DNA of 64,000 nucleotides from Asterias rubens. Its lineage: Eukaryota. The position numbers and the translations under genes were made by a program. Of this stretch, positions 40,173 to 63,115 are shown in pieces; position 1 is the stretch's first letter; each line of letters starts with the position of its first letter. The stretch covers positions 7,192,001-7,256,000 of the forward strand of contig NC_047075.1 in assembly GCF_902459465.1 (NCBI RefSeq). Direction: 5' to 3'. The notes beneath the pieces were generated by a model. That model searched no databases. It was not told the origin of the DNA and saw nothing but the letters and a program-made list of their open reading frames with translations.

Positions 40173-40654
40173 TTAAAGTGTGATGGTTTTAGACGAACGG
40201 TTGTCCGCCTGCTTTAAAGGCAATTTTTTTGTCCCATTTTGTTTTCAATCAAATCAAATGAAGATTTCAAAAGGTTGTTCAGATTCAAATTTCGTGACTT
40301 AAAAACTATTATCTTGTATAAAAAACAAATTACGCATTAAGTGAAGTATTTCTTAAGATTGTTATACTATCAAAAGCTGCTGATGTAGGTTTCTAACTAA
40401 AGGTTCCTTAGCATAAATTTTAAAAATGATTGTCAATTGTATACATTCCTTTCAAGCGTTTTTCAATTAAGAAAACTTCGTACATCAATTTTATGGAAGT
40501 TAGCATCGGGGATAAGGAATATTAATTTTGGTTTTACCTTTTATATTCAATATATGTGAAAGTAATAATCCATGTTTTAATTACTAGTTAATTATATTTA
40601 AATTATAGCACTAATCTGTCCAGTTTATAACCAATTGTTCTTTGCAAGGTCGCT

Positions 40655-40801
40655 ATGGCGTTTGATGAAGGACTGAGTCCCGATGCGATCCGACAACTAT
40701 TCTGTGTTTGTGACCTCAATGGAAATGGCTATATTGAACGCAGTGAATTGGCGTCGGTTTGTAACGATCTGGATTCAGAAGAGCTTAGTAAAGTTTTCCA
40801 G
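40655..40801 (+). CDS. RASEF: RASEF EF-hand module A, exon A1 (MAFDEG...DLNGNGYIERSEL...KVFQ)
   Basis: EF loop DLNGNGYIERSE; acceptor ctttgcaag| at 40648 (exon begins 40649); donor CAG|gtaagg, phase 0. Confidence 0.85.
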
Positions 40802-41429
40802 GTAAGGGAACTGAAACAATGGAAAGTAATGCATGCGTGAATTATTAGTGAAACTTTTTATAGGAAACAATTTTGCAACTATCGATTTTTCTCGCAACGC
40901 TCCATCGGCGACAATCGAAAACGTAAAACACGAAAAAAATGAAGAACCTAGCAACATAGGCCTAACTCTTAACTCTAAATGTAATAGATGTTAAATTTAC
41001 ATCGGGGATAAATAATATTAGTTTAATACTTTTGGTTTTACCCCTCCACTAGTTTAAAGTGTTGTGGTTTTTGTTAGCTAACATAATAATATGATTGCAG
41101 TTCGAAATTCTTCAGTAAAACAAAAACAAAATCAATTTACAGTTAAAACACCTGGACCAAAGAATCTGAAGGTTACTTTTTCAAAAATGTGACGTTAAGT
41201 TGGCTTTTTATGCAATTAATAAACCAATAATTCAATAATTTGTAGATTATCCTTCAATCAACATCTGAATGGCCACCAGTCTTTGTGTCATTGAGAATAG
41301 TTTCTAATCCTTTGCGTAAATTTTCAAAGTTTTGTCATCTAAAAACTCCCGGTAAAAATGACCCGGATAATAGTATAAACAAACAAATTATAAAAATTAA
41401 AGGCTTCAACAAATCATCAGCATCATTAA

Positions 41430-41791
41430 AGGCAGTAAACACTATTGGTAATTACTCAAAATAATTATTAGCATAAAACCTTACTTGGTAACGAGAAATT
41501 AGAGAGGTTGATAGAATAAAACATTTTGAGAAACGGCTCCCTCTGAAGTAACGTAGTTTTCGAGAAAGAAGTAATTTTCCACGAATTTGATTTCGAGACC
41601 TCAGATTTAGAATTTGAGGTCTCGAAATCAAGCATCTGAAAGCACACAAATTCGTGTGACAAGGGTGTTTTTTCTTTCATTATTATCTCGCAACTTCGAC
41701 GACCGATTGAACTCAAATTTTCACAGGTTTGTTATTTATACACCAATTGAGAAGACTGGTCTTTGACAATTACCAGTAGTGTCCAGTGTCT
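41430..41791. mobile_element. Kolobok-like MITE, inverted relative to 39793
   Basis: TTAA followed by AGGCAGTAAACACTATTGGTAATTACTC; the body is the reverse complement of the 39793 copy. Confidence 0.8.
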
Positions 41792-41906
41792 TTTGCAAAC
41801 ACCGAATGTGAACACGTCGTTTTGCATAAAATTAGGGCTCATATGTTTCGGTAAAGAAAAAGAAAAGAAAAAGGGAAAACAAATATTTCTAATTGTTTGT
41901 TTGCAG

Positions 41907-42094
41907 GCCCTCGATTTGGATGGCGATGGACGGATCAGCATGCGTGATTTCTCTGCAGGTTTTCATAGTGTTGGGAGTACACTACTGGCTCTAAGTCGAC
42001 GTAGGCGGCGTCAACAGCTTCTAGAAAGTGCCCAAACTCAAGAACTCGAGACCTTTCTGGAAAAGCTTGACAGCGACTTCGACTTATTCTCAAG
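41907..42094 (+). CDS. RASEF: RASEF EF-hand module A, exon A2 (ALDLDGDGRISMRDFSAGF...LETFLEKLDSDFDLFS)
   Basis: ttgtttgtttgcag| ... AG|gtaaac, 188 nt, phase 0-2; EF loop DLDGDGRISMRD. Confidence 0.88.
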
Positions 42095-42837
42095 GTAAAC
42101 AAATCTTCATCAGACTTAACTTATATTGGATTTGATGCATCACATGGTGAAGTATCAATTAAAATATACTCCACTGTAGTAGAATATAAAGCAAGACAGT
42201 TCTCTGAAGAACAGCATCATACCCAGCAAGTACACAATCACACACATGGTGTTATTTTACTGCAAACAAAACTTCTAGACTTATTTAATTATCAAATTAA
42301 TTTGAAAACTTATTGGTTTTTTGTCAACACTGACATGGAATTGCCAGACCACCTCAATGCACGTAACACTAAATAATAGTGTGAAACGTCTAGCCTAGAC
42401 ACTACTTTTCAAGTCTCAAGTGCTGTCTCTCCCGATGTTGTTTTATATCTCGTAAAACCCAACTCCCTTGCAATAATTGAACACTGTCACCCCCATCCTG
42501 GATGTTATCAACGTGTAAATAGCAGACTCCGGTTGCGCAGTGATATTATTGTAGGCTTATTGACTTTTCCGACATATCAGTAAATATTGACATTCACAGC
42601 CCGTTCATTTCATTATGCAGATTCCAATACAGTATTTGTAATTATGATATGATCCCCCTATAATAAGTGAACGATTTCACTGGTATCTCTGCCTTAAAGT
42701 GTACAAATGTGGACTTCGCTGGTTTACTTTCTCCTGTGTGGTTGATCAAAAATTGCTTGTTGTAAATTAAATTCACCTATTTGGTTTGGAGTCAATTAAC
42801 CAGAGGATTTTGGGAAGTGGATATTTTGAAAGTAAGA

Positions 42838-42941
42838 ATGGCTTCAAGTGATGATGAAGTGGTTGGGATTTGTGAACTTTTTGAGGAGAAACAGGACGAT
42901 GTTTCGGACACCGAAACAGTAACAGAAGAAATTGAAAATGA
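42838..42941 (+). CDS. Candidate alternative RASEF exon, acidic (MASSDDEVVGICELFEEKQDDVSDTETVTEEIEN)
   Basis: aagaATGG start context and perfect donor GA|gtaagt in phase 2, compatible with exon B and exon C. Not in the supplied ORF track because it is short. Confidence 0.5.
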
Positions 42942-45900
42942 GTAAGTAATTACATTCAATCATTTATATGGCAATTGGAGAAATCAGGTCAACTCAAGAG
43001 AGATATTATTTTACGAAAACAAAGAAGAAGTACTGCTGAATATCAGGGAGAGCCTTTGCTCAAATATTTTCATCTACTTGGGAAAGAAGAATGTTTGGTG
43101 CACTCAATTTAAAAAAAAAACAAAAAAAAAAACAGTACACCTAAGAGGTGATAGAACCGATCCAGTTTATACAACTTCTACTCTCTTATCTAAAATGTAA
43201 GTTTCACAACTGCATAATTAAATATGAAACAGTTTTAAATGGGTATGGTGTAATTTTACAAATAAGCTCTACACCGTTTACTCGATTTTACCTACCCCTT
43301 TTTTGTGGGGTTAACATAAACTAAAAACACCATCAGCAAAACGTGGCCATTACTATTATAAAAAAAAAGAATTTAATGTATTAAAATTCACTATTATTAT
43401 TGAATCAGCTGTAGATTGTGTACATGGTTCGGTGACTATACCAAGATTATTAATCCGCTTAGTTTGACAAGGGTTTCGGAGCAGACAAACTCCTGTTTAT
43501 ACATCACTGGTTTATAAGGTCACAATAGGGGGTCAAGTAAACTAGAACCAAAAACTGGGATCACAGACTGGGATCCCTAAAATGGAACCACAACTTGGAA
43601 CCGCAGGAATCGCAAACTCGGATCTCAGACTTGAACCATAAATCTCAAACTTGGACTTCAATCTCGAAGTACATTTTGGAATCGCAAACTGGTATCACAA
43701 ACGGAGAACTCGACCTAAATTAGGACCCCAGACTGGGATCCCAGACTGACTATACACAACCTTGACCCACAAACAGAAACCCATAACTTTGGCATAACAT
43801 TGAACAATTAACAAACTGTGATCTCAAACTATGCACAACTACCCGGCCGTTTAACATTCACCAGCCACAAAAAAATTCGTCTTTCTTTACTTTGAGCACG
43901 TTTCTCTTATATTTATGGCCATGGTTTGAACTGTTCATGCCGTACGGTGCTAGCAATAAACTCACAGTTCATGCCGTTCGGTGCTAGCAATAAACTCACA
44001 GTTCTATGTCAACTTAATATTCATATGCAAAGTACAATGATAGACAGTAAACAATTCTTACATGGAAACGACCAAGGATCCTTTAGTGGTGACCGTGCTT
44101 ACATTTCACACCATAAGGTTGATTCACGTGCAGATTCTAACCTTGACTCAAGAGTGAGCTATTCTTCCTTGAGTTTGGCAAAGAATAAAAGCTTTAAAGG
44201 GATGTATCCGTTTTGGTAATTACTCAAAACAGTTGTTAGCATAAAAACTTACTTGGTAATGAGCAATGGAGAGATGCTGTTGATAGTATAAAACATTATG
44301 AGAAACGGCTCCCTCTGAAGTAACTTAATTTTTGAGAAAGAGGAAAAATAGTTATAGAACCTAAGACCTGAAAGCACATAGTTTTTTCCCTTTAATTTGA
44401 TGCATTATTTTCTTGCAACTTCGATGACCAATTGAGCCAATATTTTCAAATGTTTGTTACTTTACGCATTATGTTTGAACACACTAAGTGAGAATAATGG
44501 TCTTTGACTATATTACCAGCGTGTCAAGTGCCCTAAAAACTAATGGTATCACAATATTTGGTTAGAAACCCAACAGCAGCGTTTGATGGTGTAAAGAATT
44601 TTCACTCGTAGAAATGTGGTAATTTAAAAAGATAATTGTGTTTAGTTGTTGTGCCAAAAATATGAGTGGGAGAAGCGTTACTGCGTAACGCTCTCTCAGA
44701 TTGTTTCTTCCTAATAAGGGATTATTCTTCTTCATGAATGGACATCATCGCTCCGGCGTTTCGGCGATATCTCAAAAAAGCGCCCACCTTTTGAAATAAA
44801 AAATTAACATTCTAATAAAAAGTATCTTTTACTGTAACAGTAAAAGATACTTCTTTTTTTTCCATTTAGACCCCGAGGTCAATGAATGTACTGCCAAAGT
44901 TACCCCGGAGTTTGGGGCATTAAAAAACTTAAAAATATAAACTTTCAACACACCATACAACCTACCATAGAAGTGTAATTATGATTGGGGGTTTTGTTTT
45001 CTCCGAATTTGTAGGTGTTTTGGACCAGATCTGTATAGACAGACAGTGTAGTGTTGCCGAAACCAGCTACGCAATACACTGACGGCATTTAGCATCAAGT
45101 TATTAGATTTGTATCTAACGTAACTTAGCACATGAAGTTACACAAATCTGTAAAATACATTTATTGATTACCTATCTATATAGGCACCGACCGTTTATGA
45201 CGCGATTTTCCTATATTTAAAGGTCACCAATTTGTCCATTTTATGGGCACGAGTTTTTTTCTTTTCTCGATGTTAAACCTCACGTGTCTGTTGTTTTATT
45301 ACAGGTATATAAGTAAATAATATGCACATTTTATAGCTCAACCTATGCGTTTCAGAAGTAAAATAATGTATATTGAACAGTAATGAGATATAGCGCATTG
45401 GCTGGTAACCATTATTCTGGTAAGCACAATATGTAAATGCTTAGCTCCTTGTTATGCTGATGCAGCTAATGACACTATATACGAGTTATGTTCTTGATAC
45501 TGATTTCGTGCTTTAGCTGTTTTCAATATTAGTGGCTGCGTCTCCGGATGTGGCTTGATCGTCAAGTGACCATGCGTTAAATAACAGGATGGCGAAACAG
45601 ACGTAGCCGTTCGGGCCCAAATTTGTGTTAATGAATTTTAAACACTGCAATTATAAACTTTACTGTCACATGTAGATTGCATACGAAATCTCATTTTAAA
45701 GGAACGAAATAATTGTTTCGAGTGACGAAATAAGATTTCGAGATGAAAAAATGATAACATTTAAATATAATTTTAATTTGTTTTGTGCCTTCTCAATAAT
45801 TAGGATTTGAAACTTTGCATGGGGGAAATACGATGTAGTAAGGTTTGCGGTAACACCATGTAATGATAATCTCGAAATGAGTTGGGTGGTTCTGAAAATA

Positions 45901-46554
45901 ACCATTGGTTTCAACATAGAGCAAGGGTTTCAACTCGACGTTTCGAACCAGTATACTCCGATTATCTTCTTCTCAATAATTATTTTACTTGTCCCTTTAG
46001 AGGCTCCGTACCATTGAGATTTATTTTACTTGTCCCTTTAGAGGCTCAGTACATTGAGATTTATTTTCCATGCGATTCGTGTTATCTAGGAGCGCCATAT
46101 GGTTGGATACCAGAGCGTGGGTTTATTCAAATTGAAGGCCAAACTCAACACAGCACCAGCATGCCAGCACAAAATACACAACCTTTCTCGAATACAGTTC
46201 ATCCAGTTTAGTTATGCATACTTATGCAAATTAGTCGGCAACAGGTGTGCGCGTTTAGTTTTTGGTTTAGTTTTCATGAACAATACATCTTGATGCTGCA
46301 CTGTTTGGATGTGTTTTTTCATACTCGTGTTAGCGCTTATCAGTAAAGTGTACACGGAATAAAACCGGATTATTGGTGTATGTTTAGTGTTCGGCAGTTT
46401 GTTTTTGTGTCAGCTATTACTGTGATACTTTACGGATACATTATAACTTGAGGATAAAACCTTCGATGACTGAGATTTAGTTACGGAAATATCACTTGGA
46501 GAGTAGTGTTTAAACGAAACCAGGTTGGTCTACTTTCAAGCTCGCTCTACTTTC

Positions 46555-46737
46555 AAGATCACTGTTGGTGTTTTGCATGTAACTGTCATCGTGAACAGAG
46601 TATTTTGAAACATATTTCGGTCTGCAAACACGCCTTGTGATATTCAGATCACTGTTGGTGTTTTGCATGTAACTGTCATCGTGAACAGAGTATTTTGAAA
46701 CATATTTCGGTCTGCAAACACGCCTTGTGATATTCAC
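46555..46737. repeat. 90-bp perfect direct duplication
   Basis: AGATCACTGTTGGTG... occurs at 46556 and 46646. Confidence 0.95.
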
Positions 46738-46882
46738 CAAGTTAATTGGACTTGTACGAAAGGTTTTGGAAATTTCGCAAAGTCGGTCAACTACAACAAG
46801 AAATAGCGTCAACACTAGTTTTAGAACTGCTTTAACTTTGCAATACTCGTACCATGTGAATTAGTTATACTGACAATTCTAG

Positions 46883-47218
46883 AACAATGGAGCGGTTAGA
46901 TGAGGCGAGAATACAACAACTATTTGCGGCTTGTGATTTGAACAACAGTGGATGTATCGAGTATGATGACTTGAAAGAACTATGTGCCGATTTGGCCATT
47001 AGAGAAAACGAACTTATTGATGTATTTCGTGAGCTAGATATCAATGGAGATGGAAAAATCACAATCTCCGAGTTTACGGAAGGATTTCAGAGTGTGGAGA
47101 CACTTTTTATGCGGTCTAAAACGGAGCAAGCACGGCGGAAGAGTCAGCCACTGAATGCTCAGATATCGTGGGAGGCTTTCTCAGGGCAGCTTGCAGGGTC
47201 TCAATCCCTTATGCCATG
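46883..47218 (+). CDS. RASEF: RASEF EF-hand module B, single exon (TMERLDEARIQQLFAACDLNNSGCIE...DINGDGKITISEF...WEAFSGQL...)
   Basis: Two EF loops, close to human LRSVFAACDANRSG...LDADRDGAITFQEF...WQDFQARL. tactgacaattctag| ... TG|gtagga, 336 nt, phase 2-2, with an internal ATG at 46887. Confidence 0.9.
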
Positions 47219-49564
47219 GTAGGATTGATTTATTTCTCAAGTTTTATTTATATGTAGAAGATTGATTTGGTATATTAGGAGCCACCTTAAACAGTATTCC
47301 TCAAAACAAAGTTCTTCTTAATGGCCTTAAACAATTAAATGTAAAGTCAAAAGTTGAACTCATCGGATAATTTAAAGGAATATAATTGCCATAAATTTAA
47401 AAAGTAATTTCCAAACGTAAACCTTCTCTTTAAAAAGCGTCTCAGAACAAAATGTTTCTTATTTGTCTTCAAAAATGGCATCCCTGGTGTCAACGAATAT
47501 GATAAAACACTTATCATCAATATAAAAATATCATAATCTTAAACAGCCGTTGTGCTGATGTTTGTATCATGTGTGAAATATCTTGAAATCAATTATTATA
47601 TACAAATTTTGATGGAAGACCAAACCCCATCCTAACTACTCGATGTGTTGCACACCTTAATTTAGTAAACTCATAAACCTGCGTTTGAAAACCATGTATA
47701 GGCCAGTATATTGACAAATATACCGGGTTATCAAACTGATGTAGGTTCTTTGGGAGGCCCTGGCATGATCAGTAAACCTTATCGGTCAAGTTTAATAGAC
47801 CATCGGGCAAACCAAATTTATACCAGTAGAAAAAATACAAGCGATGGATTTAAAGAATTTCGAGGACCTTTAATTTATTTTGAAAATTCAGTTTGTTATA
47901 AAATTCAAAACAGTACCGGTGAAATACTTTTTGAAATACTGCAGTAAAGTCAGTCACTTTCTCAATCATTATTGGTTTATTCTTTAAAAACAAATTTCCC
48001 ATGGCGACCAGAGGTCGAATTAAAATATACAGAGATTTAACAAAAAATTGAAGAAAAATACACTATTACAAAAGTCATGAAAAAAAAGCATTTCGATATC
48101 ATGCGTTTGATAATATAAATCGCCGCTAGCGAAATAAGTCAGACATTATTTACAAAACTTAAATTAGATGTCATCGTTTTTTTTATTTTTATTTTATGTC
48201 TTGCAACGTTAACGTGATGGATAATAAGAATATGTTTAGGTTCTAGAAGACGGTAAACCCGGATCTGATTGAAACTTCGAGCAGAAACCAGCTCTTCTCA
48301 GAGCCACCACTTCTCACAAAATAAATTTGACATGGGGTCACCGCAAACCTTCTTTCTTATAATAGGGTTGCTTGTCTAACAATAACTACATGAATACATT
48401 AATTAAATTACACCTAAAAACAACAACCAACCAAACAAATAAATAATCGCACAAACACCCGGGCAAACAACCAAACCGAAACACTGAAACAAACAAATTT
48501 GCACATGTACAAATTTAACAAAATGGTGGTCAATATTTGTAGACTGTTTGTGATGTCCATCACATGGTAACAATGAGTGATGATTGAGTAGATGAGATAA
48601 GGTTTCAAGCATCAATTGTCCTTATCTACATTATTGTCACTCAAACTGTGTTTCTAGGCTAGAAGATAGTGTGTACTTGTTGCACAATGATGGACCATAG
48701 CTGACACTTCACGGAGGCAACTGCCCTCTTGCCCCTGGTCATTGCCTCGGAAGCAACTACCGCTGTTGCCCCTGGCCATTGCCTTGGTGCTAACCCACAA
48801 TTAGAAGTGGTTAGTTTTCTACTTCAATCACACCACTTCTTAATCCATCTTTATGTTGAATCGCTTCTGCTTGAGCTGTCCTGTCATCTTTTCTCTAATG
48901 AATTCGTTGTATTATCTGTCTGATATTAACATGTATGTATGTTTGTTTTGTTTGTTTGTATGTCTGCCTGTTTTTTCCCAAGCTTCGTCTTATTAAAACA
49001 GAAAGTTAAGAATTGCTTTAAAACAGAAAAATAAGATAAAATGCTCAATATTTTTGTCCGACCTATTTTTTTTTTCAATCTTTTTGAGCTGAAACGAATA
49101 CTACGTGGTAAAGTAAACAAGAATTGTTTTCTTGACGCTGATATTTTCAAGATCCCCTTGAAACTTGACTTTGTGAATTGCCGATTTATTTGTTCGAGAA
49201 GGAACTGGGGTAGCCATGGTAGACCTACTTATTACGTATGAACCCTTAAAATATGCCCCACTTATAAATCATCTATCACTGTCCTTTGTCCTGAAGGGTG
49301 TGATTTTAAGTGTTTGAATACTAGCACAGTTGGCTAATGTGTTAATTGTAATCGATTTGTTTAGTTGTTGTGCGTTGTAAGCAATAATTACATAAAATGA
49401 ACTAATTGGTTGGCTCCTGTTTATTGCCTGATTGTGGTGCGATGAATTCAAATTAAAGCTTGTCGAGTTTATCTAACACACCTGGAAAGTTCCCATGCTA
49501 TGAAAACCCGTATCTGATTCGGACATGTCACACTCATTTGTAATCATCCCTAGAACTAATTTCA

Positions 49565-52599: not shown

Positions 52600-52742
52600 A
52601 TGAACGTAGGAGCCGGCCGGATCTTAGCCGTCATTGATGAGGAGCCGAGATGTGAAATTGCTACGGGGTCGAATGGGGAGGAAGGGGGATATATTAATGA
52701 GAACGATGATGATGTTACGGAATACAACCTTGTTCCGGAGAG
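52600..52742 (+). CDS. Candidate alternative first exon of RASEF with no EF hand (MNVGAGRILAVIDEEPRCE...YNLVPE)
   Basis: ATG with A at -3 in a locally GC-richer patch; donor AG|gtttgt in phase 2, compatible with exon C. Confidence 0.45.
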
Positions 52743-53235: not shown

Positions 53236-55923
53236 TCAGGTCTCGTTTAAGGGTTCATTCCGTATATACATGCATGACTTGGGTAGAGGTTAGGGTCGGT
53301 GTTAAGGAGTTGTAGATTCAACTTTCCCTCTTCTTTCCAGGCAAATAAGAGCTAGAAGAGCTAGCAGAGCTAGAAGTGCTGCGTTTGTAGTTTAATTGGG
53401 GTACAAGGACTACACTAAATTAACAGTGTTTCACATTTACATATTTTATACCATGTTATTGTTCTCTGCAATATTTCAGCGCCATGCAATATCGTATGAT
53501 TCATAGCAAACATCTGGTTCGTATCGATTTGATAAACTCGTGGCTCTGTTTGATAAATTCTGGGTAAATTACTACAAACGTGGGCGTATGACGTCAGATT
53601 ATCAAATAATAACTATTATCTATTTTAATTTTGTTATCTTTACGATTTGGTACATTGAATTTAAGAAGGATCAGTTTTACACGACCACGCGTTCATGGGT
53701 TTATACAAAAATGTTCAAATTATTTGTAGTATAAAATATTTGTATGTTATTAGTCGTACCGTCACTCAAAATGAGATGGAAAGTTTAACTATTCACAACC
53801 TTGTTTTGTTTAGTTGTTCTGCCAAAGATGAAGATGTTTCTGTTGTTATTGTTGTCAATGTTTTGTTGTTGTTGTTGTTGTTGTAGTTGTTGTTCAGTGT
53901 TTATTTTGTTGTCTTGTAAAGTGTATTTACCTCTATTCCAGAGGATGGATGAATGTTCATTGCAACAACCAATGGTACATATCCTACTGCCTGCCGAACT
54001 ATGACAATTCAGAAGCTCGAACCCAATGCGCTGTCAATCCTACAGGCACTTTTCATTCAATTTGTGATGATGAAAACTGTGCATCAGCAAACATCCATTA
54101 TTGATACAACTGCAAAGCAATGACGAATGGATAAGTAATTAATATTGAACTTCGTGTCGTACTAAAACGAAGGCCCGATATTAATGTTCATTGCTCACAA
54201 TACAATTAAATTCAGTTTTCGCAATCCCTCTTTTTAAGGGTGTTATTTTCATCGAACAAAGAAGATTAATTGTATTAAAATAATAAAGAGATCTGCTTCA
54301 AGGCATTGACACCTTTGGTAATTAATTTCCAAAGGCTAGTATTCACACTTGGTGTATCCCAACATGCATAAAGTAACAAATCTGTGAACATTTGGGCTCA
54401 ATTGGTCATCAGAGATACAAGAAAATAATAACAGAAAACACCCTTGTTGACCAAAAGTGTGCCAAAGAAAGGCTTCCGGCCTGCAATCTTTTAAAATTCG
54501 AAATTATTAACAAAAAATAATAGTGTTCACCTAGGATTATTTCAAACGTTGAATTTCTTTCGAACAAAGTTGTGTTACGAATGAAGTTCGAATTAATGCA
54601 ACTCCATCATTCTGTGATATTGCGTATACAGGCAAACTTAACTAAGTTACAACGAATCCTCTAGCATTTCTTGTTTTATTTTATTACTTTTTACTCAAAT
54701 TATAATGCCAGTTTTCATGACGTAAGCAATTATTTGCAAAACTTACCCGTATAAAATCATGCATTCAATTACTAAAACGAAATTATAATAGTTTTGTTTG
54801 TGCCGAAATTTCACGGCCCGATCTTGAATTCCATAAAGTACCAGCATTTGTATGCAAAGTGCGCATTGGGTACCGTCTGAATAGTTAAACCACACAGCAT
54901 GTGATTTGTGCTGGTCTAGTTTACGGACATGCTGGTTTGTTTGACTAATAAGCTTACGTACGTACCAGCACTGGACTTTGCTCGGAAAAGTTATTTTGGA
55001 TTCAACAGCCAGGAAGGCTTGGGATAAACAACTTTTATTCGTTATCGTTTTCTCTACTGATTTACACCCAAATGGTTACAAGCTGTTAAAAAGTGTCGGA
55101 TATGTCATAGCCGTTGTTAAAGTGTCATTGTTTTTGGATAAATCTGTCAGAACTTTCTATGGGACAGTTGACAATTCCTGGATGTCATCGTGACCACCAT
55201 AGTGTTATCGTACCACTGATGATTGTATTGTTTTACAACCAGCGATAACGAACAGTTGATGTCGTCAATCATCTTAAGTTGCCATTGTCGTTGTTAAAGT
55301 GTCTGTCGTTGCCATTTTGAGGAACTTTCTATTAGGGTTGACAGTTGACAATTTATGTCAATATTGTCAATACTTAAACTGACAGAGTGCACGTGTTATA
55401 CCGTGCTACTGGTGTCTGTATTCTGTTTACGGTTGCCGTGTTGTCGCGACTGCTGTCATTGTTGTGGAAATTGTCACCGCCGCTGTCATTGTCGTCGAAT
55501 TTGTCACCACTGTTGTCATTTTAATATGGAGGCCAAAGCGAGATGTCCAAGTATCAATGACAGTGAGGAATTACAATCCAGTATGTTCAATCTACTACCA
55601 GCGTACGTAATAACCTATATCAATGTTAACATATGGATAAATTATTAATTAACTATGGAATAGTCCATTCTAACCAACACTTTGTTTAATTTTAAGATTC
55701 AAAATCAAGTAGGATACCAGACGTCACAGATCATGTAACATGGTATTTTGGTTATGATGGTAGCCTAGAACTGGTAAGCATGGAATTGTGCTTAAGCTAC
55801 GTTTTATTCTTAAAGGCAAAGTAAACCTTTTGATTTACTTGTTACCATTTCACTGTTCTAATCAAACGGGGAAGTCCGGAGTGGTAGTGTCCACACTTGA
55901 AGAATAATCCGTTAATGGAATAC

Positions 55924-58194: not shown

Positions 58195-58344
58195 CCAGGA
58201 GCAAGTGTGTGAGTTATACCAACAACTTCATACGGCTGAACTTCCACATTGCTTGAGCCAGTTTGAAACCATCATATTCGAGACGATTAAAGACATCAAA
58301 CAGCAGCAGGCAGAAACAACTCGATTGGAACAGTCACTGAAAAG
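58195..58344 (+). CDS. RASEF: RASEF exon C, start of coiled coil (QEQVCELYQQL...EQSLKR)
   Basis: ttgttgttttgcag| ... AG|gttagt, 150 nt, phase 2-2. Matches human EEQVSTLYQNI. Confidence 0.93.
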
Positions 58345-59709
58345 GTTAGTGTTTCTTTGTTATTTCAACCGAACGACTATTTCATGTCTAAATAGCATTG
58401 GGACTAAACTTATTAGCATTCATGCAATTATGACTAATAACAATCTGTCTACTAATGTCTACAAACAAAAGGTATTCGCTACTGATTACAAATTTCAATG
58501 AAAACCTAAGAGCGGTTAAGTGCATCGGACTCAAGTTCTGGCGGTTAAAGTCACCAGAGTGTGGGTTCAAATCCCGGTCATGACAACTTAGACTTGTGTC
58601 ATTGAGCAAGACACTTAGCTACAATTGCTTCTCTTCACCCAGGAGTAAGTATGGGTACTGGAAGCGCAATGGTCATTCGTTTGACTTTCGCTGAAAAAGA
58701 GTCGATATTATTATTAGTATTATTTTAAGTTAGTGTATACAGACTCAATGCTGGTAGGTGACCTAGTTTTTCTACGTAAAACAATACTTCCATAAACATT
58801 GACTGAACGTAAATCACTATTCTGAAGTCAAGCTTTTGCGATCATGTGATGTAGAATAAAATATAAGCTGACGTCAATATTAGATAAATGACATTTTGCC
58901 AAGGTGAGCTGTATTTCAACTTGTTCAGTTGAAATATGTAACAGATGTTGAAATCGTAAAATGTACGATTTCAATATGGAGATTTATTGACTACAATCAT
59001 ACGATGGAATAATTGACATGAATTTTTCCAATTAAGGCTGTTAAACAAAACATGCAGCTGCAGTTACTGTGTGGACAATCATGTTCTGCACACTTAAGGG
59101 GCATTCTATTGTTTGACACTGTGTGGACGTATGTGGGTCCACACGGTGTTTTGAATTCAAGTCCCATAGTATGTGGACTTATGTTGTTCTGAAGTCCACC
59201 CTAAATCATTTGCAAAAACGAGAACACAAGAGTTGGACAATAAAAACACAAACAACAACAGAACACATCACCGAATGTAGCTAATGAAAATGTTTAAAAC
59301 AAAACAAAAATGGAAATGTAATGTCATTTAAGTCAGCATGTCTTCTGTATTTATAAAATAAAGCTTGCGATCAGCTTCTGACACCATACGCCTATAACCG
59401 AACACCCAACCATCAGAACACTCTCATCTGCTCACAACCAAACTTTCTCCTTTGTTGCTCCCCAAATTTGGAACAACCTCCCAGTACGTATCAGAAACTA
59501 TAACTCTTTACTTTTGTTCAAAAAATCCTTTAAAACTCATTTGTATCAGATGTAATAACTTGTATGTTGTAGTTATAGTTCCATGGCCATTGGTTTTGCT
59601 CTTTTCAGTGCTTTGATCGTAATGTAAAGGCGCGTTACAAGTATTTTGTTGTATGTAAAGTATGTATGTTATCAGATATTAAAAGGTTGATGTTGGTTTG
59701 TCTGTACAG

Positions 59710-59896
59710 AGCCAACGAGTCCCACACAGAGCATCTTCAACACATAGAGCTGGAGATGGAGACACAAATGACAAAGTTAGAAGCAAGAGTAAGAGAAGAA
59801 GAGAAAGAAACAGCCATCATTGAGAAAGAAGAACTCAAGAAAAGATTAGAGGCTGAGATAACTGAGTTACAAGCAAACCTCAGCAGATTTCACTCC
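59710..59896 (+). CDS. RASEF: RASEF exon D (ANESHTEHLQHIELEMETQM...LSRFHS)
   Basis: tctgtacag| ... TCC|gtaagc, 187 nt, phase 2-0. Matches human LSELEEEMDQRIQ...ETEVGDLQ. Confidence 0.92.
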
Positions 59897-60311: not shown

Positions 60312-60493
60312 TTTGAAAAGAGATGGCACAGTCGAGAGAAACCCAAAGATGAAGCGCTTAAGAAGAAACTGGATGAGTTACAGCATGAGAATAGACAACT
60401 AAAGAGCAGCTTAACCGAAGCCTCAACTACACTAGCCATAACACGTAGTGAGTTAGCAGCATTCAAGTCAGAGTATGATGAGTGTATGGATAG
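60312..60493 (+). CDS. RASEF: RASEF exon E (FEKRW...LQHENRQLKSSLTEA...SELAAFKSEYDECMD)
   Basis: ttattgttgtag| ... AG|gtaaga, 182 nt, phase 0-2. Matches human LSMENQKVKKDLLEAQ...SELDALKSDY. Confidence 0.92.
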
Positions 60494-60817
60494 GTAAGAA
60501 CTAAACTAGGTTTAGGTTTAACCTCAAAAAGTAAACTGGTTTATGGTTATAAATATATCTGATTTTTAGCTGATTTATAAAGGTGTGGTAAAGTTAACTA
60601 GTTTACTACCTTGTAACTCGAGTGGTTGTTTAACTTGCAAACCTTAATTATGTTTGTTTGCTACTTTAATTTGTTAAAAGTTCAACTAATATTAGTTTAA
60701 TCACTTTTGCAAGAATTAATCTGCGATCGTGATTCATGATCGCCACTCATCACAAGAAATACTTCACAGATTTTATACCACTCACTCACTTTTCTTTATT
60801 TTCTGTTTTCTGTCTAG

Positions 60818-60886
60818 TGATAAAAGTTTACTGCACGAGTACATGTACGATCATGACAGTCTCGCAAGACAAGTTCAGTTGCTACA
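60818..60886 (+). CDS. RASEF: RASEF exon F (DKSLLHEYMYDHDSLARQVQLL)
   Basis: ttttctgtctag| ... CA|gtaagt, 69 nt, phase 2-2. Matches human DRNSLERQIEILQ. Confidence 0.9.
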
Positions 60887-61275
60887 GTAAGTATATAACA
60901 ATCTTTCATTTCTGGGTTTGCCAAGTCATTTTGATAACTGTTCTTAAACGATCGGTCTGTAAACTTGGGTTGGGTTATATTTACGAGTTTTAATCTTTAT
61001 ATAAACGAAACGAAACGTTGGACATCAGAGAACTATGATACAAAATTTCAAACGATTGAAAAAAAAAATCGCACGATACGGGTTCAAATATTTGAAACTT
61101 TGCGAGGCTCCAGAGTTAATTTATAATGCCATATTCGTAAACAAAAAGAACAATTTAGTATGAAATTTAGTACGCACATGTGCAGTTAAGTATATGCAAT
61201 GTCAATATTGCCAATGCATACGACGGCAGTTTTATGCTAGTTTTTAAAATAATGAATGATGGTTTTATGTTTTAG

Positions 61276-62216: not shown

Positions 62217-62332
62217 TATCAGCATCAACGGTCACGCTCTGTTACACCAACCAATCAGAAGAGGAATGCCTTCAGCATGGTGCATTATGGTGAAGATTCA
62301 CCTTTGACCTTAAACATGGCCGCTGCTGATTC
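62217..62332 (+). CDS. RASEF: RASEF exon H (YQHQRSRSVTPTNQKR...AAAD)
   Basis: cttgtttatcctttag| ... TC|gtaagt, 116 nt, phase 0-2; bridges exons G and I in frame. Low-complexity linker with little homology. Confidence 0.78.
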
Positions 62333-62711
62333 GTAAGTACTTTAATAAACCGTTTTGTTTGAAACTAAATTAATACATTCCAAAAGAATCGCAATCGGCA
62401 TTGTCGAGTCTGTTTCATATTTGTATTATTACTCGCATATTTTGTAACAATGAAGCATGCATTGCTAGAAAGGGTAAGCAAACTTGGCATTGTTCTTGTG
62501 TTTTCCATCAAGGGGTCTTGATCCTAGACTTAACAGAGTGCAAGGGTGAACCAGATTAATGTAGTGTGTGTGTATTATTTCTAGAACCAACACGACCCAA
62601 AAGAAATATTCACACAGTGCAGTGTTACCGCAAACCTATTTTATAGTTATACTTCCACTGTGCAAAGTTACAAATCATACTCAAAATATAATTAGTAACT
62701 TTATGATAATG

Positions 62712-63020
62712 TAGTCATGATATGCAGATTTAGTTGAATGAGGCGGAGTCTGCTATCTCGAGAGAGTGAATAATTAAGTTTATGAATTATTCAAGATACG
62801 CAGATTTAGTAGGAGGCGGATTTTAATATTTAATACTCCGTAGAGAGTGAATAGTCAAGATTATACAATATTCATGATATGCAGATTTAGTCGAAGGCGG
62901 CAGATTCTAATATCTCAAGATTCTGTAGAGAGTGAATAATCAAGTTTGTGCATTATTCATGATATGCAGATTTAGTCGAAGAAGGCGGAGTCTAATATCT
63001 CAAGATTCCGTAGAAAGTGA
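62712..63020. repeat. About 80-bp degenerate tandem repeat, 4 copies, each containing the exon I acceptor
   Basis: CA(T/A)GATA(T/C)GCAG|ATTTAGT occurs near 62716, 62792, 62873 and 62958. Confidence 0.88.
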
Positions 63021-63115
63021 ATCTCCAATGCTTTGTCTGCCTGGATCGGGTTCGACTAAACGGCGATTCGTTTATCATCAAACAGCCGACGGTGAAAGCT
63101 ATCCAGATGAAGTCG
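62970..63115 (+). CDS. RASEF: RASEF exon I (FSRRRRSLISQDSVESE...SYPDEV); the gene, including the Rab domain, continues beyond the window
   Basis: gatatgcag| ... GTC G|gtaagt, 146 nt, phase 2-1; ends at ..EV-D like human ..CEVD. Confidence 0.72.

Follow-up and report, generated by a model that had tools for sequence, protein, structure and literature searches.

The RASEF/Rab45 homologue of the sea star Asterias rubens has five alternative first coding exons (from 5' to 3': A, D, B, E and F), all spliced to a shared exon C. Two of these, A and B, encode ancient EF-hand heads that are used singly. We have considerable confidence in this reading as a whole; by analogy, promoter choice would probably set the head of the encoded adaptor. 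The window, i.e., the whole stretch of DNA that was analysed (64,000 nucleotides of contig NC_047075.1), contains the 5' half of the gene, and all coordinates below are window positions on the + strand.

A large Rab gene with five first exons

The encoded product is a large Rab GTPase, with an N-terminal head followed by a coiled coil and a C-terminal Rab domain. Exon C (58195-58344; 150 nt; xQEQVCELYQQLH...LEQSLK), which is joined by every alternative first exon, starts the helical/coiled-coil part, and further shared coiled-coil exons lie within the window at 59702-59896, 60312-60491, ~60810-60887, 62217-62333 and 62971-63114. The gene extends about 11.5 kb beyond the window end. There, in window-equivalent coordinates, the Rab-domain exons are at 68879-69019, 70857-71054, 71386-71508 and 72614-72700, with the motifs GDAAVGKS and WDTAGQERF encoded by the exons at 68879-71054, and the last exon (75458-75553) terminates in a prenylatable cysteine tail (KCCI*). 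The Pfam families PF00071 (Rab GTPase) and PF27574 (EFCAB4A_helical) were precomputed, the latter for cluster representatives containing the A. rubens isoforms. By sequence comparison, exon C and the subsequent exons are common to the homologues, and every full-length homologue found was named RASEF homolog. The N-terminal EF-hand pair of a RASEF/Rab45-type large Rab is supplied by A and by B, and the helical region by the shared exons. Those homologue names, together with the match of module B to the human RASEF structure described below, argue for probable orthology to human RASEF rather than to another EF-hand protein. An atlas look-up returned generic EF-hand/EFCAB4A leads only.

All five first exons start with a separate ATG and end in phase 2 at a donor leading to 58195 (splice sites and phases were read from the sequence). 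Exons D, E and F encode no EF hand, and D and E had no Pfam match. Exon D (42838-42941; MASSDDEVVG...EEIEN) ends in the donor GA|gtaagt, exon E (52600-52742; MNVGAGRILAVIDEE...) in AG|gtttgt, and exon F (55526-55602; MEAKARC...NLLPA) in GC|gtacgt. Four of the five combinations are already modelled for A. rubens as RefSeq isoforms of "ras and EF-hand domain-containing protein homolog", the identical gene, and all four map exactly on the window: isoform X1 (XP_033638599.1/601.1; P0273; 737 aa) is A-C, X2 (XP_033638602.1; 736 aa) is B-C, X3 (XP_033638603.1; P0268; 673 aa) is E-C, with exon E matching at 100%, and X4 (XP_033638604.1; P0269; 660 aa) is D-C. Exon F had no A. rubens annotation in the cluster members examined and is modelled in related sea stars only, i.e., in Asterias amurensis isoform X7 (P0271; 88% identity), with counterparts in Acanthaster isoform X5 and Patiria isoform X7. 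In tblastn searches, X1 fell on A1, A2 and C, X2 on B and C, X4 on D and C, X3 on E and C, and A. amurensis X7 on F and C, with the downstream exons common to all through the Rab domain. These RefSeq isoforms are computed models. They do not say how the isoforms differ, and they do not identify A and B as ancient paralogues. In assembled contigs from four runs, depth was zero across most of exon D (bin 42850-43049). The three EF-less first exons, the existing annotation of the isoforms and the age of the duplication (at least bilaterian) had all been overlooked in the first-pass annotation.

EF-hand modules A and B

Module A is split between two exons. Exon A1 (40655-40801; 147 nt; 100% identical to isoform X1) carries the ATG and the first EF hand, with its loop DLNGNGYIERSE at 40712-40747, and ends in a phase-0 donor (ag|gtaagg). 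Exon A2 (41907-42094; 188 nt) follows an acceptor tttgcag| and encodes the second EF hand, with its loop DLDGDGRISMRD at 41913-41948, then an RRRRR stretch and the helix LETFLEKLDSDFDLFS, before the phase-2 donor AG|gtaaac to exon C. Together, A1 and A2 make 335 nt and so end in phase 2. A high-copy repeat lies within the intron between them.

Module B is encoded by a single exon (46276-47218; CDS 46887-47218, 332 nt), which is represented both in contigs and in RefSeq X2. It contains the loops DLNNSGCIEYDD (46935-46970) and DINGDGKITISE (47037-47072), followed by the helix SWEAFSGQL and the phase-2 donor TG|gtagga to exon C. Thus, a phase-0 intron separates the two EF hands in A, whereas B has none. 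The putative 5'UTR of B is long, being genome-colinear from at least ~46276, and further contigs extend to 46052.

The two modules scored almost equally against Pfam EF-hand_7 (49.4 bits for spliced A and 49.9 bits for B, with a gathering cutoff of 30). They are 43% identical over 105 aligned residues, with a local alignment score of 157 against 28.7 ± 5.1 for shuffled sequences, and their likeness reaches past the EF loops to a GFxSV motif, the basic stretch and the last helix. All four loops are canonical 12-residue loops with acidic or polar residues at positions 1, 3, 5 and 12, position 12 being Asp in the second loop of A and in the first loop of B. From these residues, both modules are predicted to bind Ca2+. 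The first-pass annotation had proposed that the gene is a RASEF/Rab45 homologue, that A and B each consist of an EF-hand pair plus the following helix with a common phase-2 end, and that an intron interrupts the pair in A but not in B. All of this agrees with the present sequence features, the mapped RefSeq isoforms and the Rab domain downstream.

Vertebrate RASEF is described as having one EF-hand pair (PMC8303950), and the mollusc module at the B position has lost its first EF loop. These observations would suit a reading in which one of the two modules is a decaying, non-functional leftover with transcripts that are noise, the other being the true N-terminus. We regard this as very unlikely. 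Both A and B retain open frames, canonical loop residues and intact splice sites, and both occur in transcript contigs. Between the two Asterias species there were no amino acid changes in the 111 residues of A, and only two in the 110 of B. In addition, both types have been kept across phyla as distinct groups.

Use of A and B singly or in tandem

Contigs from four runs, presumed (a guess) to be RNA, were mapped on a 6,000-letter stretch, with A1 lying outside that stretch; such assembled contigs are blind to transcription starts and rare junctions. In runs X1, X3 and X4, contigs of A2 span 41900-42094 and then continue for 29 nt past the donor into sequence that is not B. Contigs of B were found in the same three runs (run X1 record 8, 46707-47218; run X3 record 23; run X4 record 30, 46276-47218). 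They are unspliced over 46883, being genome-colinear for 170-600 nt upstream of it, which makes B look more like a first exon than a cassette. The ~4 kb preceding the B contigs had near-zero depth in its non-repeat part (42250-46050). Both the A2 and the B contigs end exactly 29 nt (k-2) after the donor, which is where a k=31 graph would be expected to break if the two converge on a single common exon. The junctions of A2 and of B to C thus rest on the RefSeq models together with this contig geometry.

The distance between A and exon C (16 kb, with other exons intervening) could be taken to mean that A forms a short gene of its own, upstream of RASEF, an outcome that the first-pass annotation had itself named as fatal to its proposal. 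This is scarcely credible, since RefSeq X1 links A2 directly to C, there is no in-frame stop or terminal exon after A2, where the contig runs 29 nt past the donor, and the same C motif follows A-type modules in echinoderms, hemichordates, molluscs, a brachiopod and a nemertean. With A placed in the RASEF gene, A-C and B-C are two interchangeable N-termini, as had been proposed from their open frames, and both are represented by RefSeq isoforms and by transcript contigs.

The same proposal had included a third form, A-B-C, in which B would also serve as an internal cassette, with A2 spliced to 46883 to give four EF hands and a doubled Ca2+ sensor. The frame is indeed open: measured from the AG at 46881-46882, which lies 4 nt before the B ATG and comes with a branch-point-like ctgac, exon B is 336 nt, and it has its own ATG. 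The frame, ATG and length claimed for a symmetric exon B therefore stand; its acceptor is a sequence possibility, not seen in use, across which the contigs run colinearly. Upstream of the B ATG there are nine open codons containing two frame-compatible AGs (46883 and 46865), approximately the number expected by chance. In coral, an AG with the same offset lies behind a poly-T tract; oyster has no comparable acceptor.

Two predicted proteins do carry two serial EF pairs before the same helical region. One is Pocillopora damicornis pdam_00010435 (P0267), an ab initio coral model that links both modules, a join not repeated among the retrieved RefSeq isoforms of that gene. The other is RefSeq isoform X2 of the nemertean Tubulanus polymorphus (P0170), in which the four EF loops reflect tandem copying of the B type within that lineage (sister modules, 100/98) and not A plus B. 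Four EF loops were present in only these 2 of ~140 homologues examined, which is far from the invertebrate norm that the first-pass annotation had considered as a possible objection. Across four sea stars, the 25 RefSeq isoforms include no example with both A and B, no piece joining 42094 to 46883 was present in the contigs of the four runs, and the A2 contig has one continuation, which leads away from B, while the B contig is unbroken at 46883. Overall, we consider the cassette form unlikely, and the doubled sensor is not upheld by these data. A and B are used singly, not in tandem, i.e., they are mutually exclusive, with room left for rare forms.

Age of the duplication and relation to vertebrate large Rabs

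A tree of 55 modules was built from a short alignment (116 columns), with the classes named beforehand by eye from sequence signatures. It recovered a bilaterian A clade (support 97/97) and a B group (91/94). Forcing all echinoderm modules together cost 38 lnL units (AU p = 0.00027); a recent duplication, within the echinoderms, was rejected (AU p = 0.0003). Placement of the coral type 1 module with A was not rejected (p = 0.48). The tree thus indicates that the A/B duplication predates the split between deuterostomes and lophotrochozoans and is far older than the echinoderms. The first-pass view of A and B as old duplicates is in line with the tree. At the DNA level, A and B share no repeat, which also fits an old duplication. 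The genomic order A, B, C was found in both of the other genomes in which order was examined, i.e., those of an oyster (Magallana) and a coral (Pocillopora), and two N-termini on identical downstream sequence occurred in twelve species pairs from Echinodermata, Mollusca, Nemertea and Cnidaria.

Among solved structures, the best match to module B was the EF domain of human RASEF (2PMY; 3e-12), followed by CRACR2A (6PSD), whereas the best matches to module A were calmodulins. Module B aligns without gaps to both 2PMY and 6PSD, and by this similarity it corresponds to the EF domain of human RASEF. A word-indexed search with module A returned echinoderm proteins only and was uninformative on vertebrates. 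In an all-against-all representative search with module B, long multi-EF proteins dominated by summed scores; single-stretch matches were used.

The functional context comes from published work on large Rabs (PMC6504896, PMC6504887, PMC8303950, PMC5057473). Human Rab45/RASEF and CRACR2a share the architecture of the sea-star gene (EF pair, coiled coil, Rab), and both are EF-hand/coiled-coil adaptors that activate dynein, in a manner that is Ca2+-dependent for CRACR2a but not for Rab45 (PMC6504896). In vertebrates, these two behaviours thus belong to separate genes (PMC6504896), whereas the sea star has two heads in one gene. In mouse, an alternative transcription start and exon 1 of RASEF produce, alongside Rab45-L, an EF-less testis form, TSG/Rab45-S (PMC5057473; PMC8303950), which resembles the sea-star forms starting from D, E and F. 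However, mouse has one EF head and one head-less form, whereas the sea star has two distinct EF heads and three head-less starts. In the large-Rab literature searched, EF-hand forms were described solely as "with" versus "without", and a conserved A/B swap across deep time appears not to have been described, although the gene models are already public.

Given the published behaviour of human Rab45 and CRACR2a as dynein-activating adaptors, we propose that promoter or first-exon choice would set the Ca2+-sensing, dynein-coupling head of a Rab cargo adaptor, i.e., A, B or none. Choice of head might then tune Ca2+ dependence, or the strength of dynein recruitment, per cell type. A broader proposal, which we put forward tentatively and regard as possible rather than probable, is that A and B were already mutually exclusive EF first exons in the cnidarian-bilaterian ancestor. 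Their order may have been kept for >550 million years for the sake of two regulatory modes, one Ca2+-gated (CRACR2a-like) and the other Ca2+-independent (human Rab45-like), and in vertebrates either the choice would have shifted to separate genes or the A head would have been lost.

In invertebrate RASEF, two anciently split EF heads serve as alternative first exons, and their order is shared by an echinoderm, an oyster and a coral. Large Rabs of this kind are coupled to dynein through the EF-hand/coiled-coil head, which in CRACR2a makes the coupling depend on Ca2+, so that one gene with two natural heads would be well suited to studying what determines the Ca2+ dependence of a dynein adaptor. 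The two-head gene is also relevant to the relationship between the ancestral gene and the vertebrate RASEF/CRACR2/RAB44 set.

Paralogous EF-hand modules and alternative first exons

Reading and translating the DNA placed module A of the RASEF/Rab45 homologue, i.e., the first of its two EF-hand-pair modules, in exons A1 (40655-40801; 147 nt, phase 0) and A2 (41907-42094; 188 nt), which together end in phase 2. The coding sequence of module B runs from an ATG at 46887 to a donor after 47218, with the same phase-2 end. Exon C (58195-58344) completes the split codon with its first base and then reads QEQVCELYQQLH. These results agree with the module coordinates and shared phase-2 ends reported in the first-pass annotation.

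Pfam detected EF hands in A1, A2 and B, the spliced heads scoring 49.4 and 49.9 bits, above the EF-hand_7 threshold. A and B were 43% identical over 105 aligned residues, with a local score of 157 (28.7 +/- 5.1 for shuffled B), and their similarity did not stop at the loops but took in GFxSV, a run of basic residues and the final helix. The module pair is therefore real and exceeds generic EF-hand likeness. At the DNA level, no repeat connecting A with B was found. Judged by their residues, the four loops look Ca2+-competent; position 12 is Asp, not Glu, in the second loop of A and the first loop of B, a possible source of differing metal affinity.

Among solved structures, the best match to module B was the EF-hand domain of human RASEF (2PMY; 3e-12, ungapped, 63 residues), so that B corresponds to the head known from human RASEF; B also matched CRACR2A (6PSD; 2e-8). 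The best matches to module A were calmodulins, with a gap, and a search restricted to A returned echinoderm proteins only. A 103-aa open frame elsewhere on the same chromosome (locus L004; G000:C15:523838-524050) is 34% identical to B residues 2-72 (E = 7e-7); it is probably the exon that encodes the EF hands of a different gene, of large-Rab or CRACR2-like type.

With a full-length Saccoglossus homologue (P0061) as family query, the cluster listing supplied Asterias rubens isoforms X1-X4 (XP_033638599, XP_033638602, XP_033638603, XP_033638604), named "ras and EF-hand domain-containing protein homolog", which are already public in RefSeq. Mapping of isoforms to the window and 60 kb of DNA downstream revealed five alternative first coding exons, every one with a good phase-2 donor and spliced to exon C. 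Two of the combinations that the annotation had considered open, A-C and B-C, exist as isoforms X1 (A1+A2+C; 737 aa) and X2 (B+C; 736 aa). The others begin with the short, acidic exon D (42838-42941; X4, 660 aa), exon E (52600-52742; X3, 673 aa) or, in Asterias amurensis X7, exon F (55526-55602). These last three exons lack EF hands, and Pfam gave no match for them. The shared part continues through coiled-coil exons to the Rab domain, marked by GDAAVGKS and WDTAGQERF, and finishes with KCCI* some 11.5 kb beyond the window end. All five kinds of N-terminus are present in Acanthaster planci, and RefSeq isoforms of Patiria miniata include four of them, the D type being missing.

Transcript contigs and the four-EF form

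We placed contigs from four sequencing runs, guessed to be RNA and representing two species, on positions 41250-47249 (6,000 letters; A1 lies outside). Depth was unbroken across A2 and across approximately 46276-47218, and close to zero over 42250-46050 outside a high-copy repeat. In runs X1, X3 and X4 a contig spanned 41900-42094, preceded by as many as 424 letters and followed, past the donor, by exactly 29. The first seven letters of these A2 contigs agreed with the end of A1 save for one mismatch, as expected for spliced A1-A2, and none had a second piece on B. The B contig in the same runs reached 47218 and then extended for exactly 29 letters more. Because 29 is k-2 in assemblies with k=31, this is the geometry expected of two paths merging into one shared exon; the targets of both junctions are assigned from that geometry together with the RefSeq models.

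The high-copy repeat, an interspersed one, sits within the A1-A2 intron (41426-41793); another copy, 81-90% identical to it, follows 2.77 kb further downstream (44194-44440). Summed contig depth over it reached 10^5-10^6 in all four runs and hundreds of false joints were produced; the repeat has the look of a short, abundant element that is transcribed.

The annotation had also proposed a four-EF form, A-B-C, using an acceptor at 46883 (AG at 46881-46882). For 170-600 nt before 46883, B contigs followed the genome sequence without a break (from 46707 in run X1, 46276 in X4 and 46052 in other pieces). Thus, the proposed acceptor is unused in these assemblies, and B acts as a first exon whose 5'UTR is long, although contigs can reveal neither transcription starts nor rare forms. 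None of 25 RefSeq isoforms from four sea stars contains A and B together, leaving the four-EF form unsupported for the sea-star gene.

Rare splicing of A2 to B, yielding four EF hands, has a low probability given these unspliced contigs and isoforms. Nine codons are open before B's ATG and hold two frame-compatible AGs, roughly what chance would provide. In the coral Pocillopora damicornis (locus L012) the second module has an AG 4 nt before its ATG, at the same offset as in sea-star B and behind a poly-T stretch (L012:16505-16531), and the ab initio model pdam_00010435 splices the modules together at this acceptor, giving a protein with four EF hands. The oyster has nothing comparable to the AG proposed as B's acceptor.

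Four EF loops occur in just 2 of ~140 homologues examined, i.e., this coral model and a nemertean isoform, and so are not the invertebrate norm. In the latter, Tubulanus polymorphus isoform X2 (P0170, RefSeq, 980 aa), the loops start at residues 73, 105, 192 and 224, and its modules are sisters to each other inside the B group described below (100/98). In this lineage the B head has been doubled in tandem, and one predicted protein includes both copies.

The 5'UTR of first exon B contains a perfect 90-bp tandem duplication (46556-46735; 2.0 copies, 100% identical). Contigs from runs X3 and X4, of the second, related species, omit 46533-46645, which suggests that the additional copy is peculiar to Asterias rubens or its assembly.

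Age and spread of the two heads

Homologue N-termini split into two signature classes. A types have loop starts 31-32 residues apart, ELAxxCxEL, SRRRRR and ...LS|CQEQV; B types have loop starts 34 residues apart, DLxELCxDLxIxxxEL, xLFxRK and ...AWExF...P|SQEQV. In twelve species (Echinodermata, Mollusca, Nemertea, Cnidaria) two distinct N-termini stand upon identical downstream sequence, and hence belong to one gene.

Maximum-likelihood analysis of 55 modules (116 columns) yielded a supported A clade of 24 bilaterian modules (97/97; echinoderms, hemichordates, molluscs, brachiopod, annelid, nemertean) and a B group of 11 (91/94; echinoderms, Saccoglossus, the annelid Owenia, Tubulanus). Mollusc modules without the first EF loop formed a separate long-branched group, and the two coral types grouped weakly (81/58). 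A single clade of all echinoderm modules was rejected (delta lnL 38.2, AU p = 0.00027); a tree joining cnidarian type 1 to the A types was not (delta lnL 0.97, p = 0.48). The old module duplication suggested by the annotation is borne out by the two groups and by this rejection: on the tree it had occurred in the bilaterian ancestor at the latest, and possibly already in the common ancestor of cnidarians and bilaterians.

The order A, B, C is found in the oyster Magallana gigas (L011: 3001-3333, 7397-7684, 8542) and in Pocillopora damicornis (L012: 10001-10327, 16529-16858, ~18756). The A-type head is a single exon in the oyster and in coral type 1, so the phase-0 intron of sea-star A (40802-41906) is not common to them; it was either gained on the sea-star side or lost in oyster and coral. 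The mollusc B-position module (L011:7397-7684; isoforms such as P0215, P0238, P0250 and P0235) has lost its first EF loop and kept the second (DSDxDG...), which suggests a head drifting from Ca2+ binding.

Proposed head choice in a large Rab

Human Rab45 and CRACR2a are described as dynein-activating adaptors whose single chain carries EF-hand pair, coiled coil and Rab domain. Binding of CRACR2a to dynein-dynactin depends on Ca2+ and on intact EF hands, whereas that of Rab45 is insensitive to Ca2+ (PMC6504896; PMC6504887). Isoforms are reportedly common among large Rabs (PMC8303950). Loss of the EF head through alternative first exons is already published for mouse RASEF: TSG/Rab45-S, which lacks the EF-hand domain, results from an alternative start site together with a different exon 1 (PMC5057473). 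In the portions of the literature searched, we found no description of two paralogous EF-hand heads as alternative first exons conserved across phyla.

We propose that the first exons have separate promoters, and that promoter and first-exon choice would equip the same coiled-coil/Rab body with either EF head, A or B, or with none, the heads presumably being mutually exclusive down to rare transcripts. If the heads differ in function, then by analogy with the human adaptors their choice may set whether, and how, Ca2+ links Rab-marked cargo to dynein.
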